A stretch of 64,000 nt of DNA from Dicyema japonicum (GCA_011109175.1 RDEW01000005.1:2025747-2089746); one strand, 5' to 3'. Counted from the first letter of the stretch, positions 29,340-40,413 are shown. A program made the numbers and translations. The notes: generated by a model from the sequence alone, not told the origin.

Positions 29340-32147
29340 TTTACACCCAAAACCTCGGTAAAACCAAACTAACTATCACGTGATCTCGATGCGTTCCACC
29401 AAAATCCTCATCCTTTTTTGGTGCTCCTCCCTCGTGCCCACACAAGCTCGTACTGGGCGGCTGACTATATTTGCAGGGCCACTTTCCCGCATGCCGGAGT
29501 TTAGTTGTATGAGGGCCTCCATAGTAGTCGGTCCGGTTCTGTGTCTCCCACAAGTCCACCACTCCGTGACTCTGAAAGCCTTCTTTTGAACGTCCTCGAT
29601 TTTCTTAGTGTTCGAGCATGAGGTCCCCACGAAGCACACGCGTACGAGAAGCATGGTTCGATATATTGCTTGTAAATGTTCATCAAGATCGGGTGGGTAC
29701 CTGTCTTCCATATTCCAGATAAACATTTTAATACATTGATCCTCTTCTCGCACTTCAGAACAATGTTTGCCACGTGTGGTGACAAACATAAGTGTACATC
29801 CAGTGTCACGCCCAGGATCTTCTGACATTTTGTAAAGGGGATTTCAATGTTGTCCAATTTTAACTTGACAGTCATCTTCCCCAACCTTTTGTCCGAACTA
29901 AACATAGACGTAACCGACTTTCTGGAATTTATCGTGAGTCGGTCCAGGTTAATTTGTAATCATTCTGTAGCATTTTGGATATCCAAATCAAGCGAGGCCA
30001 AAACAATGTCGTCCGCATATGTGAGTAGAACATCGCTATTGGATTCCGGTGTCGGGAGGTCTGCCAGATATAAATTGAATAAGGCGGGGGATAAACGAGA
30101 TCCTTGGGGGACACCGTTTGGGAGAACACGTGAGACTGATTTCAGTCCTCCGAGGGATACACGTCCCCTTAAGAAATTTGTTATTTAAAGTTTAAGCTTC
30201 CCCGGATCTCGGACTGGAAAATTTTCTTTGATAATATTTTTCTCGAAATAGAATCAAAGGCCTTGTTAACATCAATGGAACATAAGACTGTCTTCAAATG
30301 CCTTGGTTTGTTTGAAAAACCATCTCTAATGAAGTTAGTTAATTTCTGTAGGTACGTTGATGTAAAACAATCGTTCTTGAATACGTGTTGAAAATCTTTT
30401 TCTGGTAAGAAAGCCTTGATTCTCACAAGCACAAGCCTTTCCAGGATTTTTGATATGGAACATAACAATGACACAGGTCTAAATGATGCCGGATCTTCCT
30501 TAGGTTTTCCAGGTTTCAGTATAGGTCGGATATTGGCTTGCTTCCATAACAACGGTATTAAATTACAATTAATTGAATAGTTATACACCGACGTTAGAAA
30601 ACCGACTCCATTATCTCCAAGGTTCTTCAATAACACTACTGGAATGTTGTCGGGACCGGCAGAGTACGTTGTTCTTGTAAAACGCAGCGCATTCTTCACG
30701 TCTTCATCCGAGAATTAAACTGGGTTAGAATCCTTCTTCAGTTTTCTCCATGAAGAGAGAATCACTTCCGGCTTCCAGTGTTCCTTGTACGAAATTTTTG
30801 TGTAGAGTTTTATCAAATTGTTAACGTCTCGTTGAGTATAGTCATCCTCGGGGAAGTTTCTTCTCCCTTTGCAACATTTAGGATGGATTTCCACACTTCT
30901 CCGGTACTACGGTTGCGATTTACCTTTGTAAGAATCCGATTCCACTTCAATTTCTGGGCCTTGAACTCTCTGGCCTTTATTTCGTTGTTTAGAGCTCTGA
31001 TCCGGATTTTCGTTTTTAATGTGATCCAATTAGACTTTTTGAGGTGATTTCTTTCTTTGATCAATGCCGACTTCCCTCGACCATTAGAGGAGTTTAGACG
31101 ATGCTTGGGAATAGCCAATGATCTTGCTTCTAGGATTGTGCAAGTAAAGTATTTGATCGCTTTTTCTAGCGATTTGAAGCTGACCAAGTAACAATTCTTC
31201 AGTCTATCATCAGAGATTGCGCGATACAATTCCCAATTAGCAGCTTTGTAGTTATAACTAGCAGGTGTTCTCCTCACTCTGACTTCTTTCATGACCTTCA
31301 TCACAATTGGATTATGGTCGCTTCTTGTTTCGTAGAGGACTGACCAATCAATTTTTGATGAAAGCGACGATGAGCGGAGTGTTACATCCGGTGAAGTAAA
31401 CTGATCCGTCTCTCTGAGTGGGGTCCTTGTATTTTTCGCTGGATCGTTCAGAATCGTTAGGGAGTCCGATTTCAATAACAATAGCTTCCCTCTCGTGTCG
31501 GGCTGTTGGGTTGACAACCATAATGGGTGCTTTGCGTTTAAATCTCCACATATGATGATCTCATCGTAGATAGCCAATGTTGATAAGTTTGGAATAACAT
31601 AGTCCTTTGGGCAGGAGCCGGGAGGAGGCAAGTAGATATTCACGAGGCACATACTTCCTTTCGTTGTCCCAAGCGAGATTCCAATTGCCTCAGTAACCTC
31701 GTCATTTCCAACAAGTTTCCTCACTTCCGAAGTAATGTCTCTGCATTTTAGGTTCTTTTTGAATAGAGTAAGTAGTCCACCCCCTCTTCTCTTTTTACGG
31801 TCTATCCTGATTGCCTCGTATCCAGGGAATGAAGGAGTGGAATCATGCATGTTGAGTTTAGTTTCATGAATCATGGCCACGTCGATCTTCTGATTTGCCA
31901 GGATTGACCGGAGTTCCCTGACCTTTCCTTTAATTCTGTTGATGTTTAATTGGAGAGCAGTAAATTTCTTTTTTCCACAGTGGGCTGAGGGTTTTCGCAG
32001 GGAATGTTTGGACTTTCTTGAAACATATCTCCGGGGGTCGATAATGACCCCGGGGGGAAGTGGTCTAATGGTCCTTTTCGGGAGAGTATTAGAAGCCCTC
32101 TGGGCGTTTCCAAATCCTTTTGAATTTTTTGAATTGGTGAACCACAT
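29340..32147 (-). mobile_element. Near-complete single-ORF LINE (APE endonuclease plus RT; I/Ingi/Jockey-like) with frameshifts and an (AAAT)n tail
   Basis: APE motifs LQLNIN, MIHETKL, GGGLL, NIYLPP, GDLNAKH, PDVT and SDHNP. RT motifs AGPDNIP, FRPVSLLCSISKILE, DVNKAFD, GVPQGSRLSP and TYADD. Post-RT KILGVTLD and YKQYIEPCFSYACASW. Confidence 0.92.
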
Positions 32148-32608: not shown

Positions 32609-34689
32609 AACGCCACGCTACAATTTAATAACGCTACAAATACATAAGGAATACGATACTCTAAAAATATAAAATAATGATTATTCAATCAAATTGTTTT
32701 CTATTTAATAACAATTATTAAATTTAAACTTTTAGCGGTAAAGATAATTGATTTTATATGCCCATTTTTGCTGTATATTCTCGTGACGGAATGCCCCTTT
32801 TAATAGACAAGTATGGGATATTCGAAAATGTATAAACTTAATTACTTAGTATAAAGATATTGAATTCTCAAATTAACTTGATTTGTGCCTTTTATATGTT
32901 CTCAAATTTCAACTAGATTGCCGTCGACAAGATCTTTTCCGATAATTTTTTTATAGCCTTTCGCAGATTGCCAAATGAGTACTTCGTTTTGTTATTTTTA
33001 TAGTTGGATTGTGTTTGTCGTTAATGAATACAGTCAAGGCGAGCTCTTTGCTATTAAATTGATGGAATTGTTCATTCAAATACTACTAATTCTCATAGGG
33101 AAAAGACTGCTCTCGAATGCGGACGATGATTTCTCATTTAAAGTAATTTAAGCCATCAATTCAGTTATTAAGGTCTGTGCTGTCTCCGGTCATAAAACAT
33201 TTGTCCTTTCTGAAACGAGATTCGTTGATATCTTCCATTTGTCGGCCTCTTTCCTCTTCTTCCCCCCAGGTTGCTAATAGTATCATAGTTTCTAGTTATT
33301 TGTGAATGAAGTTGCTCGGGAAGTCGACTGTTTGTACACGATGATTGTGTCAGAACCCTATCGCTGTGTTGTCGCCACTGAAAACGTGTGGAATCTTTCC
33401 GAATTGATGATCATTGCTCTGTCTTTCTTGACTGAGTGTTCAATATCCATACAGCCGATCTACCTATCATATAAAGACGAGGAGGTCGTTATGGTGTATT
33501 ATTTATGTATAGAGTCTGTGCTACCTCCATACCTTCGTGATTGACCCTCAGAACACATTAAGTATAATAAGTCACAAGCCTCAATGTACTGGAGCTGCCG
33601 ATAAGGTTTGTGGACCTCCTTTATTTTCTGACGAGGTCACTAATTCGTCGTTTTAATGCCCATGTGATTCACTTCAATTTCTTCCCCACCCACTCAGAAG
33701 ACAAACACCGAAAGAAGTTAATCGACCATCTTTCGGCTGTGAAAGAGTATTTTGTGTTGTTATCCGAGATTTGATGTCCAATTTAATGTTGGAGGGATCT
33801 GGGTGAAGCTCTTCTTCCGCAAAATTCAAAAATTTTCCCAGCAGCTGGCTATTTTCGCTGATTTGTGCAAAGAACGGCAAAATTGTATTTCTCGGTGTGA
33901 ATGATAGTATTTACGACATTAACACAATCGATAAAGTGCGGTCAGTTTTACTATCACTGTTACTGCGACGAAGTCGGTCTTGTGGTCGTCGTTTGTGGTG
34001 TTAAGTGGACTAGTGGACAGATCAGAAAGTACTCTCAAACCCTTTTGAAACTCATTGAGTCGTGAATTTTATATTTGTAAAATTTTAACAAAATTTGTGT
34101 TGATAATCGATTTATTGAAATTCTTTATCAATGATTTGATCTGAGAGATAGCTCGTCCCTGTTTTGTAATGACTACAATACTTCCTCGATTAATGTGCAT
34201 TGATTACTATGCCATCAATCCTAATTCCGAGTCTATAACTCTCGAAACACTTGAACGAAACGAAAATTAGTAAGGGCTATCAAACAGCCCCCTCTACACT
34301 ACCTTTATCAAATAATTCTAAAAACAACCTATATGTAGAGCGGTTCAAGAAGGCCGTCTCCCTTGGTTTCAACCTTCCTCATGCCAGTCTAGGGTTACAT
34401 AGTTAACTGGGATATTCATTCTCTTTTAACCCAGTGATTCCGTGGCAACAATAAATGGAAATAAAGAAACACCTGCTACGATAAGCCGTAACAGAATTAT
34501 CAGTGGTAGCGTGTAGTTTTAAAAATAATGATGGATCAGGAGGCATTGAGTGGATTTAGTGTTACTCTACTTAGTGTTAATTTAATAAGAATCACACGAT
34601 ATTGTAAATAATCGATTTATTGACATCCCTTATCATCACACTCTGCTAGTCTAGTTTTAAATGTTGACGGCCGTTTGATTTTGTCTGCC

Positions 34690-35302
34690 ATGGGATCATG
34701 TTGTTGCTTTCCACTTTTTCTTCACAGTAGTTGAGGGTTTGATTTGGTTTTAGAGAGAAGAACAAGAGTAAACAGTTCTTACAAAAAGATTGTGATTGTT
34801 GGGGATGGCTATTGTGGAAAAACTTCTTTGTTAGTGACGTATACTACAGGTTTCTTCCCAGTGAACTATGAACCCACAGTTTTTGACAACGATGTGGTCG
34901 AGATCTTTTTTGGAGGGATTCTTGTATGTAAATGGTTTATCTAAGGTTCGGGCTTCTCTTTGGGACACTGCGAGCCAGGAAACTTTTAAAAACTTGCGTC
35001 CCTGCTGTTATGCTGATACCAATTGCTTCATAGTCACTTATGCAGTCAACAGTCCAGCCAGTTATCGAAATGTGGAGGCCACGTGGATGCCTGAAATAAT
35101 GGCAAATTCTCCAAAGGCTAGTATTGTACTAGTGGCAACAAAGGTCGACCTAAGAACAGCTAATTTTGGTTTTGTCACAGTTGAGATGGGTCAAGCCTTA
35201 TCCAAGAGGATCAAAGCTACCGAATTTGTGGAGACTTATGCACGACTTAATATTGGAATAATGGAGGCCATCATGGCAGCAGCTAGAGCAACAATCAATT
35301 AA
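34690..35302 (+). CDS. Atypical Rho-family GTPase with N-terminal MGSCCC and no CAAX; exons 34690-34726, 34754-34923, 34946-35302
   Basis: [38 protein letters not shown] and [11 protein letters not shown]. Two GT-AG introns of 27 and 22 nt join the exons in frame. Confidence 0.88.
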
Positions 35303-36189
35303 TGTAACTTGTTAAATACGTCCAAATGAGTAAACAGTTTCATTTTTATTCAGTTTCTTGCAATGAGCCAATTATAACCATAATTTTATAGTCATTAAAC
35401 TGATTATCAGGTTCCTCTAATGAACACAACTCTTTTCGCTTATACTTTTTACCTGTTCATCAAGTCGAGTGATTTTAGAAGAGACCAGGAGAATAGATCT
35501 CCAATAAAGATTATTTATTTCTAAGGGAGTCATCGATGCTACCTGTTCTACCATCCTCTACAGTTTCACTGATAAGTCGGTTATTCAATTTCATATTTCG
35601 CTTATACTTTCAAATTCGACCATATTTCTAGTAATTTTCTAACATTGATCTCCCAAGTCTGATAACTTATTTTGGCGGTGTTACAATTAACATTATGTTC
35701 CAATACTTTAGGATTAAAAGTGCTATGGTAAATGACTGAAGTAATGTAGGGTATCAAAAGTTGCGTGATTAGATGTCGTACAGCTGACCTTGGCAGTTAA
35801 AATGTTTTAAATGAATTTGAGATCAGTAATATGTGACCTATTTATGTCATCAGGTCTGTCGAGAAAAAAGTAACGGTTGACATATATTTAAGTGCATCCA
35901 GTAACCATGGTTACAAATGCAGAGAAAAGTCCTTGTAATCTGCGAACTCTCCTCTCGATCTCTGTTACTTTACATCTAAAAGATCTCCTTCGTTGTTAAT
36001 AACTTTGTATATTGACTTTATCTTATAACACCTTTTACAATGCCGGGACTGACCGATCTATGGGAACGACCAAAATCTGCTGCGTCCTATTTAATAGCTG
36101 CTGGCCTCCTACATGTTTGTGAGGCTTGGGTTACTTAACTAACACTTTTTACAATTGCCTGGATTCTCCTCGTGATGGCCTCTTAAATG

Positions 36190-36520
36190 GACTTAATCAC
36201 TAATGCATACAGACTTATCATCCTTTCTCATCTTTGCCCGGTGTTCCTCCCTCGTTGCCGCGCATGATCGTACAGGACGGCTGACTGAATTTACGGGTCC
36301 GCATTCCTGTATTCTGCAGTCTAGTTTCATAATGTCCTTCAGAGGCTTCGGTTCGCTGTCCTCCACAAATGCAACGCTCCGTTAATCTGAAAACCATCTT
36401 TTGCATTTCCTTGATATTCCTCATATTTTCCCAAGATATTGACGGTCCCCACGAGGCGCATGCACATGAGAAACATGACTCAATGTACTGGATCAGTGTA
36501 ATTTCCGTAGACATTCAACG
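36190..36520 (-). mobile_element. LINE 3' fragment of the 29340-32147 family
   Basis: QYIESCFSCACASWGPS, and a 3' region sharing cctccctcg...ggctgact with 29420-29470. Confidence 0.75.
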
Positions 36521-38613: not shown

Positions 38614-39631
38614 GTGTAAAAAATTCCTATGAATTTATTTCAAGCGATTGGACTTGACGACCTCGGAGGCCCAGTTCTACTACGATCTGGAGGCGGATAT
38701 TGGGGCTCTTGAAATAATCCTGGTTGTATGGAGGCAGAAAGTATGCTTGTTATTTCCTTAAGTCCCTGCATTCCCAGGTGCTTTAAATGNGGGCAGAACT
38801 CGAATATGGACTGGACGAGAGAAGATGTTGCTCATTTTCTGGTGGTCCGTCTACAAGCAAGAAAAGGTGAAATGGGGAAGTCGATTGTTCGATTCTGTTC
38901 AATTACGATTGTAAACATTGGTGCAAAAAATTCCTATGAATTTATTCCAAGCGATTGGACTTGACGACCTCGGAGGCCCAGTTCTACTACGATATGGAGG
39001 CGGATATTGGGGCTCTTGAAATAATCCTGGTTGTATGGAAGCAGAAAGTATGCTTGTTATTTCCTTAAGTCCCTGCATTCCCAGGTGCTTTAAATGAAGA
39101 TTCCATCAAGCCCTTCGGCAGGAGAGCTTTTAGTGTTTTTGTTAAGTTTTTCGATATCAGTTGTGCTGATTACAATCGGGTTTCTTTGATCCATCTATTT
39201 CTTAGAGAGAACCTTTATAAATTATTCTTAAAAGAATAAAAATCTTTTTGACCCAAATAATTACGAATTTATTATTGCGAATCTATTATTTGAAAATTCT
39301 CCAATAATAATAATAATCCAAAATTTAAAAACAATAAAACTAATTTTAGATAAGTTCTATTTTTGTGATCTTAATTTGGCAAACAAAAAACTTTTTAAAT
39401 TTTAAAATCATTTTAGATATTTTAATTATTTTAATTTTTAAAGATATATCAAAAAAATTAAAAAATGTTTTAATTATTTTATTTCTAGTTATATTTATGT
39501 CGCAGTTTGCTTCATATAAGTTTATCTTCAAATTTGTCGTTGTCATTTTAGATATTTTAATTATTTTAATTTTTAAAGATATATCAAAAAAATTAAAAAA
39601 TGTTTTAATTATTTTATTTCTAGTTATATTT

Positions 39632-40413
<782 letters not shown>

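Follow-up and report, generated by a model that had tools for sequence, protein, structure and literature searches.

A predicted Rho GTPase of Dicyema japonicum with a candidate N-terminal dual-acylation signal and no C-terminal CAAX tail

Introduction

In practice, what defines a Rho GTPase is its prenylated C-terminus, together with the control that RhoGDI exerts on its movement between cytosol and membrane. Relocation of a lipid anchor to the N-terminus has precedents among small GTPases, namely the N-terminally dually acylated Rab5-type paralogues and an N-myristoylated Rheb (PMC5869587). Our searches of open-access papers did not turn up any Rho described as N-terminally acylated. Here we describe a predicted small GTPase gene at positions 34690-35302 of the plus strand of a 64,000-nucleotide stretch of the Dicyema japonicum genome (GCA_011109175.1 RDEW01000005.1:2025747-2089746). 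This whole stretch is referred to as the window, and all positions are counted from its first letter. A sequence-only reading of the window had proposed that the gene encodes a Rho GTPase in which C-terminal prenylation has been exchanged for N-terminal myristoylation and palmitoylation. Our analysis supports the structural part of this proposal, as the protein has a Rho G domain, lacks a CAAX motif and carries a dual-acylation motif, while the acylation itself is a prediction. The explanation that we favour, by a modest lean, is that the locus is an intact, lineage-specific, fast-evolving atypical Rho gene of a tiny-intron animal, with its membrane anchor moved to the N-terminus.

Results

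Gene model

The gene consists of three exons and two micro-introns, 27 and 22 nt long, both with GT-AG ends. Exon 1 is a micro-exon of 37 nt (34690-34726) that opens with an ATG in the context gccATGG and encodes 12 residues and the first base of Lys13. Intron 1 (34727-34753, GTAGTT...GGTTTTAG, ending TTTTAG) carries an in-frame TGA at 34732-34734. Exon 2 (34754-34923, 170 nt) encodes the basic patch KRRTR, the P-loop GDGYCGKT (34801-34824) and switch I, and is followed by intron 2 (34924-34945, GTATGTAAATGGTTTATCTAAG, GTATGT...CTAAG). Exon 3 (34946-35302, 357 nt) encodes DTASQE (34964-34981), TKVD (35138-35149), a shortened Rho-insert region, ETYA (35231-35242) and helix alpha5, which ends AARATIN before the TAA at 35300-35302. 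The spliced coding sequence is 564 nt long, in frame, and translates into 187 residues. The upstream micro-exon and its 27-nt intron had already been proposed by the sequence-only reading and were reproduced from the window sequence. The second micro-intron is implied by the same earlier model, from N-terminus to stop, and was not named there.

Several features of the sequence agree with this model. Exon 2 contains no in-frame ATG and its frame is shut upstream by the TGA at 34732, so an upstream start exon is required. If intron 2 is kept, the genomic open reading frames at 34744-34944 and 34868-35302 lie in different frames; its excision restores the frame and gives the exact Rac/Cdc42 spacing from the beta2/beta3 hairpin to DTAxQE. 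An alternative donor at 34730, which creates a 24-nt intron, would add one Ser after His12 and leave the N-terminus otherwise the same. We also scanned the whole window for GT...AG stretches of 17-33 nt that bridge two long open frames. The lengths of these candidate micro-introns peak at 22-25 nt, and many of them are T-rich and end in TTTTAG or TTTAAG. Both introns of the Rho gene match them in length and in T-rich style. The window has a GC content of 37.8% and contains many fragments of long interspersed nuclear elements (LINEs), and the D. japonicum genome has been described with a mean intron length of 38 bp, a GC content of 36.7% and 49% repeats (PMC6736024). Among animals, such tiny introns are known only in dicyemids and myxobolid myxozoans (PMC13644364). 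Downstream of the stop, putative polyadenylation signals can be read from the sequence at 35394-35399 (ATTAAA) and 35503-35508 (AATAAA), both on the plus strand. Open reading frames at 33.3-34.1 kb were considered as additional upstream exons and rejected, as they have no family matches and are not needed by the model.

The N-terminus carries a candidate dual-acylation signal

The predicted protein begins with MGSCCC, in which Gly2 is followed by cysteines at positions 4, 5 and 6, and continues with a hydrophobic stretch, FPLFL, and a basic stretch, HKRRTR. As the pattern for N-myristoylation we used PROSITE PS00008, G-{EDRKHPFYW}-x(2)-[STAGCN]-{P}, and G-S-C-C-C-F satisfies each of its positions. 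The three cysteines also lie next to Gly2 as in dual N-terminal anchors. Both strands of the window together contain 2,094 ATGs. The peptides that begin at six of them match PS00008 at Gly2, and of these six only the one at 34690 has Cys in residues 3-7. These observations suggest that exon 1 starts with a predicted signal for N-myristoylation of Gly2 and S-palmitoylation of Cys4-6. Taken together, Met-Gly, three cysteines and a basic patch correspond to a classic membrane signal, in which dual acylation is combined with a polybasic stretch, and the sequence supports the view that a chance origin is very unlikely. This combination of lipid and basic residues at the N-terminus would mirror the lost polybasic and lipid tail of Rho proteins. 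Among the 150 nearest relatives, taken as cluster representatives, none has such an acylation start, with the exception of one obvious fragment, and in no case is loss of CAAX accompanied by an N-terminal acylation motif. Neither an N-myristoyltransferase (NMT) nor a DHHC acyltransferase is encoded within the 64-kb window, which is the sole stretch that was read.

The C-terminus lacks a CAAX motif

At the other end, the protein stops at the end of helix alpha5 (...RATIN, compared with ...RAVLN in RhoG), and the hypervariable region and CAAX motif are absent. A CAAX ending is found in 96 of the 150 nearest relatives. The ending AARATIN without a polybasic-CAAX tail, as described earlier, was reproduced from the spliced coding sequence. 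The sequence-only reading had itself pointed to splicing into a terminal CAAX as an event that would speak against it. We paired every GT donor of 35100-35302 with each AG acceptor within the following 1.5 kb, and no such route was found. The last donor, at 35228, lies upstream of G5 and alpha5 and its use removes both, so that a G domain left intact gains no terminal CAAX by splicing.

The codons directly after the TAA (35303-35314, TGT AAC TTG TTA) read C-N-L-L, as had been reported, and were proposed to be a CAAX-like relic. They are followed by codons for N-T-S-K and a TGA stop. CNLL would not be terminal even on readthrough, because these four sense codons come after it. A reading of the TAA as Gln under the ciliate code was rejected, because the genome is that of an animal and the extended protein would have ...CNLLNTSK as its end, with no CAAX. 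A C-x-aliphatic-[LFIM] sequence lies directly 3' of 10 of the 7,336 stop triplets in the window (0.14%), and two relatives have similar endings, CNLL in P0050 and CNVL in P0014. In view of this chance frequency and these endings, the idea of a CAAX relic is not absurd. If CNLL were the terminus, it would leave almost no linker after alpha5.

Deviations in the G domain

Conserved columns of the G domain were compared in an alignment with 68 single-domain relatives. In DTASQE, Ser replaces Gly60, a residue that is Gly in 94% of the 68 relatives, and DTAS is found in none of the 150 nearest relatives. In G5, Tyr167 stands at the position of Ser158, which is Ser in 97% of the 68 relatives. This site is polymorphic: at 35238 (+) the window has A, which gives Tyr167 (ETYA), and the contigs of four public DNA runs, which provide a second haplotype, have C, which gives Ser and the canonical ETSA. 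Besides these two changes there are a few milder departures at conserved columns. The P-loop has Tyr at the position of Rac Ala13, and the effector residue equivalent to Rac Tyr40 is Asp. Thr35, Gln61, GxxxxGKT and TKxD are retained. The Rho insert, normally a helix of ~13 residues between beta5 and alpha4, is mostly missing, as a single gap of 10 residues relative to RhoG and Rac falls exactly at the insert. Entamoeba EhRho1 and a few relatives also have the short-insert form, which is a known minority state of the family.

DTASQE, ATKVD and ETYA had all been listed earlier as deviant G motifs, with possibly altered GTP hydrolysis as the consequence. The first of them holds. ATKVD is not a deviation of G4, because the normal Rho-type TKxD core is kept, and ETYA belongs to one allele only. 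The suggestion of altered GTP hydrolysis thus comes to depend mainly on G60S, since one of the three cited motifs is not deviant and another is allelic. The backbone amide of Gly60 forms a hydrogen bond with the gamma-phosphate. For the G60A mutant of H-Ras, a predominance of the inactive 'state 1' and a strongly impaired intrinsic GTPase activity have been reported (PMC4867591). A Ser at position 60 could plausibly alter switching.

Placement in the Rho family

The assignment to Rho GTPases was confirmed with both halves of the protein. The translations of exon 2 and exon 3 match Pfam Ras PF00071 with E values of 1.2e-8 and 2.5e-24, respectively. Against PDB, exon 2 best matches Cdc42, Rho1 and RhoA (E ~1e-11), and exon 3 best matches RhoG, Rac2 and Rac1 (E ~1e-20), with the RhoU structure 2q3h also matched. 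The top PDB matches of both halves are thus all of the Rho family, and the switch I signature F-P-x-x-Y-x-P-T-V-F-D-N can be read in the sequence. All elements of a Ras-type G domain are present (GDGYCGKT, T35, DTAxQE, TKVD and E-x-x-A). Trp before DTA and the TKxD motif favour a Rac/Rho-like state over Cdc42, and both have been described as plesiomorphic characters (PMC13393502).

An exhaustive HMMER search of protein libraries returned 8,525 relatives, of which the best are 40-56% identical and none exceeds 56%. A word-index search with exon 3 returned a single distant fragment, and an exact look-up of the 144-residue genomic open reading frame in the protein libraries gave no match. This absence says nothing about expression, because the libraries evidently do not contain the proteins of this organism. 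By these comparisons, the predicted protein is a divergent orphan within the Rho family.

Allelic variation and competing explanations

The strongest competitor of an intact gene with a moved anchor is a decaying or already non-functional Rho paralogue, in which the frame is open by chance and the N-terminal motif has no function. We consider this explanation unlikely, and the points that speak for it, and so weigh against the favoured one, are as follows. G60S and the Tyr at Ser158, the latter in the window allele, are changes of the type seen in decaying or pseudo-GTPases. The 10 residues missing from the insert and the absent CAAX would fit decay as well, and the CNLL directly after the stop could mark a recent truncation. 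In a quick maximum-likelihood tree the protein has a long branch (length 1.07) and no well-supported sister, its nearest pairing having a Shimodaira-Hasegawa-like approximate likelihood ratio test (SH-aLRT) value of 83, and it forms no supported group with any reference. The sequence-only reading had proposed to look for an orthologue in relatives, and none was found in the exhaustive HMMER search of the protein libraries. No Rho paralogue was detected in the window with tblastn, and the libraries contain no close paralogue either. No public RNA run was found over the locus. There are only four runs, from one 2019 study, and all of them are DNA, because exons, introns and flanks of 33600-36400 are evenly covered with no joints. 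The lack of RNA runs may hint at low expression, and both splicing and expression of the gene are predictions from the sequence.

The same four runs provide the second haplotype. The counts given here for the coding sequence come from the differences listed and are minimum values, with two to four more differences lying in 35004-35414. Over 1,569 nt there are 38 differences from the window, a divergence of ~2.4%. The coding sequence has at least six substitutions, four non-synonymous (434 sites) and two synonymous (127 sites). The excess of non-synonymous changes in number would fit a decaying paralogue, and the resulting dN/dS of ~0.6 is weak evidence of constraint. Exon 3 differs by Y167S, M175K and E176Q among the differences listed. 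Two of the non-synonymous sites, Tyr167 and Met175, suggest relaxed constraint, as it is the window allele that differs there from the residues of the relatives, and not the other haplotype.

Against decay stands the state of the gene itself, with 187 uninterrupted codons over three exons and with the GT-AG pairs and the strong start context intact. None of the listed differences creates a stop or touches the start or a splice site: in the second haplotype the ATG, exon 1 and all four splice dinucleotides are unchanged, and it is intron 1 and the upstream flank that vary. For example, the X1 contig (34677-34972) has five differences, all outside exon 1, namely two in intron 1 (34743 and 34745), two synonymous changes (L39 and P53) and F65V. 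The coding sequence also differs by only ~1.1-1.4% between haplotypes, about half the ~2.8% found over 600 nt upstream. This allelic pattern is compatible with mild constraint, and is far from proof of it. In addition, a dual-acylation motif with a basic patch would be too specific to arise by chance at exactly the start where it is needed.

We note two further observations on this variation. At least three haplotype combinations are present in the public contigs over 33600-36400 (e.g. 35262 versus 35264). The divergence of ~2.4% is higher than the heterozygosity of 1.24% reported for the D. japonicum assembly, which suggests pooled individuals or another source population.

A second explanation accepts that the gene is expressed and questions the anchor. 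The protein could be a CAAX-less Rho that works without a lipid anchor, or one that is solely palmitoylated or solely myristoylated, so that the anchor swap would be overstated. Caenorhabditis elegans CHW-1 is functional without any lipid motif (PMC5982818), and acylation of the protein described here is a pattern match. However, Gly2, a PS00008 pattern satisfied throughout, three adjacent cysteines and a basic cluster make up the full architecture of a dual anchor, and we regard this explanation as quite improbable. Finally, a different 5' end, with MGSCCC not being the N-terminus, is very improbable: enumeration of ATG, GT and AG triplets does give in-frame alternatives (ATG 34698 with an intron of 31-34 nt ending at 34757 or 34760, or a start exon farther upstream, e.g. 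ATG 34528/34531 with an intron of 132-195 nt), but 34690 precedes 34698 and has the better context, the acceptor at 34753 is the first AG past the T-run whereas the alternative AGs lie within a stretch of purines, an intron of 130-195 nt would fall well outside the 17-33 nt class of the window, and the alternative N-termini contain no recognisable signal.

Neighbourhood of the gene

A Ras-family match at 39.4-40.4 kb was considered as a Rho paralogue and rejected, as it is a Rab14 orthologue. This gene (39634-40413, +) lies 4.3 kb downstream of the Rho gene, is split by micro-introns and has RAB14 1z0f as its best PDB match (E 1e-19). It retains WDTAGQE and a C-terminal prenylation motif, ...GRKCFC. 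Because Rab14 keeps both WDTAGQE and CFC, the oddities of the Rho protein are gene-specific and do not reflect decay of the small GTPases of this genome at large. At 39408-39678, a segment of 135 bp that includes the Rab14 start codon and first-exon sequence is repeated in tandem with 100% identity. This creates two identical candidate Rab14 5' exons in a row, and the segment was either duplicated very recently or doubled by an error of the assembly.

Upstream of the Rho gene there is a 33-nt direct repeat (34098-34130 and 34603-34635, 85% identical), whose copies share an exact 16-mer, ATAATCGATTTATTGA, with the palindrome ATCGAT inside. The second of the two copies is found 55-90 nt before the Rho ATG. 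The window contains 3 matches versus 0.23 expected, and the repeat is a possible promoter element. Immediately 3' of the Rho gene, at ~35950-36330, there is a very high-copy repeat with many loose ends and a summed contig word depth of ~96,000 versus ~700 in the flanks; it is probably a short interspersed nuclear element or another abundant transposon. On the minus strand, an RTE-like LINE fragment at 30184-32147 consists of adjacent open reading frames with Exo_endo_phos_2 (E 2e-13) and RVT_1 (E 1e-9) matches.

Discussion

The features described above can be combined into a model of an atypical Rho protein. In this model, the whole C-terminal membrane-targeting module, i.e. the hypervariable polybasic region and the CAAX motif, would have been lost, and an equivalent module would be present at the N-terminus, with co-translational myristoylation of Gly2, S-palmitoylation of Cys4-6, the hydrophobic FPLFL and the basic HKRRTR. 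The acylated N-terminus would anchor the protein to membranes. We propose that such a protein would not be extracted by RhoGDI, because it has no prenyl group, and that its membrane cycle would therefore be set by palmitate turnover. G60S, the mostly deleted insert and the Asp at the position of Tyr40 together imply that the protein probably departs from Rac and Cdc42 both in its GTP-dependent switching and in its partners.

In its widest form, the protein would be the first Rho with an entire membrane module, lipids and basic patch together, moved from the C- to the N-terminus. As predicted from the motif, it would carry both myristate and palmitate, and it would be free of RhoGDI control, with switching altered through G60S, the lost insert and the effector loop, and it would be convergent with ARA6 and Rab5b in one of the most reduced animals. 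We put this wider claim forward tentatively, as a real possibility that falls somewhat short of being probable.

Should the protein be produced in its predicted form, it would show that a Rho membrane-anchor module can be exchanged between the two ends of the polypeptide. The protein would also be a natural RhoGDI-independent Rho and a natural G60S variant of switch II for study. It would likewise help to understand the remodelling of signalling proteins in an animal of ~30 cells and ~5,000 genes. Its practical value is modest until expression is demonstrated.

Several described systems share a part of these features. Among Rho proteins of animals, RhoU/Wrch-1 and RhoV/Chp also have an N-terminal extension and rely on palmitate in place of CAAX prenylation (PMC5982818). 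However, their palmitoylated Cys is C-terminal (CFV/CXX) and their extension is proline-rich and unacylated, whereas the Dicyema protein has no tail and carries its Cys cluster at the N-terminus. CHW-1 resembles it as an animal Rho without CAAX or CXX and with an atypical P-loop residue (PMC5982818), but has neither an N-terminal extension nor a lipid motif and is presumed to be soluble, whereas a strong acylation signal is predicted here. The Rho1 and Rac1 proteins of microsporidia are likewise Rho proteins of fast-evolving parasites, in which CAAX is replaced by predicted S-palmitoylation (PMC13393502). In these proteins, however, the palmitoylated Cys is still C-terminal and there is no N-myristoylation.

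The insert-less form is shared with Entamoeba EhRho1 (PDB 3REF, 3REG and 4DVG) and with the metazoan relatives P0016, P0017 and P0051, all of which align without the gap of ~10 residues at the insert. These relatives are 42-46% identical to the Dicyema protein and differ from it in that none has an acylatable N-terminus, and P0051 and P0014 (likely a shorter form of P0017) keep the CAAX. At the loci of P0017 and P0016 (L001 and L002, in two unrelated animal assemblies), the insert-less Rho adjoins a Ras-family gene on the same strand, which suggests tandem arrays.

The closest parallels in anchor architecture come from outside the Rho family. As in the Dicyema protein, ARA6/RabF1 and the Rab5b-type Rabs of alveolates have dropped the C-terminal Cys motif and carry Met-Gly and Cys at the N-terminus. 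They are Rabs, conserved over large clades and with proven acylation, whereas here the motif, with its predicted acylation, is carried by a single orphan of the Rho family. In euglenozoan Rheb, prenylation has been swapped for N-terminal myristoylation, as confirmed by co-expression with NMT (PMC5869587); this exchange took place in the Ras family, whereas the one proposed for Dicyema japonicum concerns a Rho protein.

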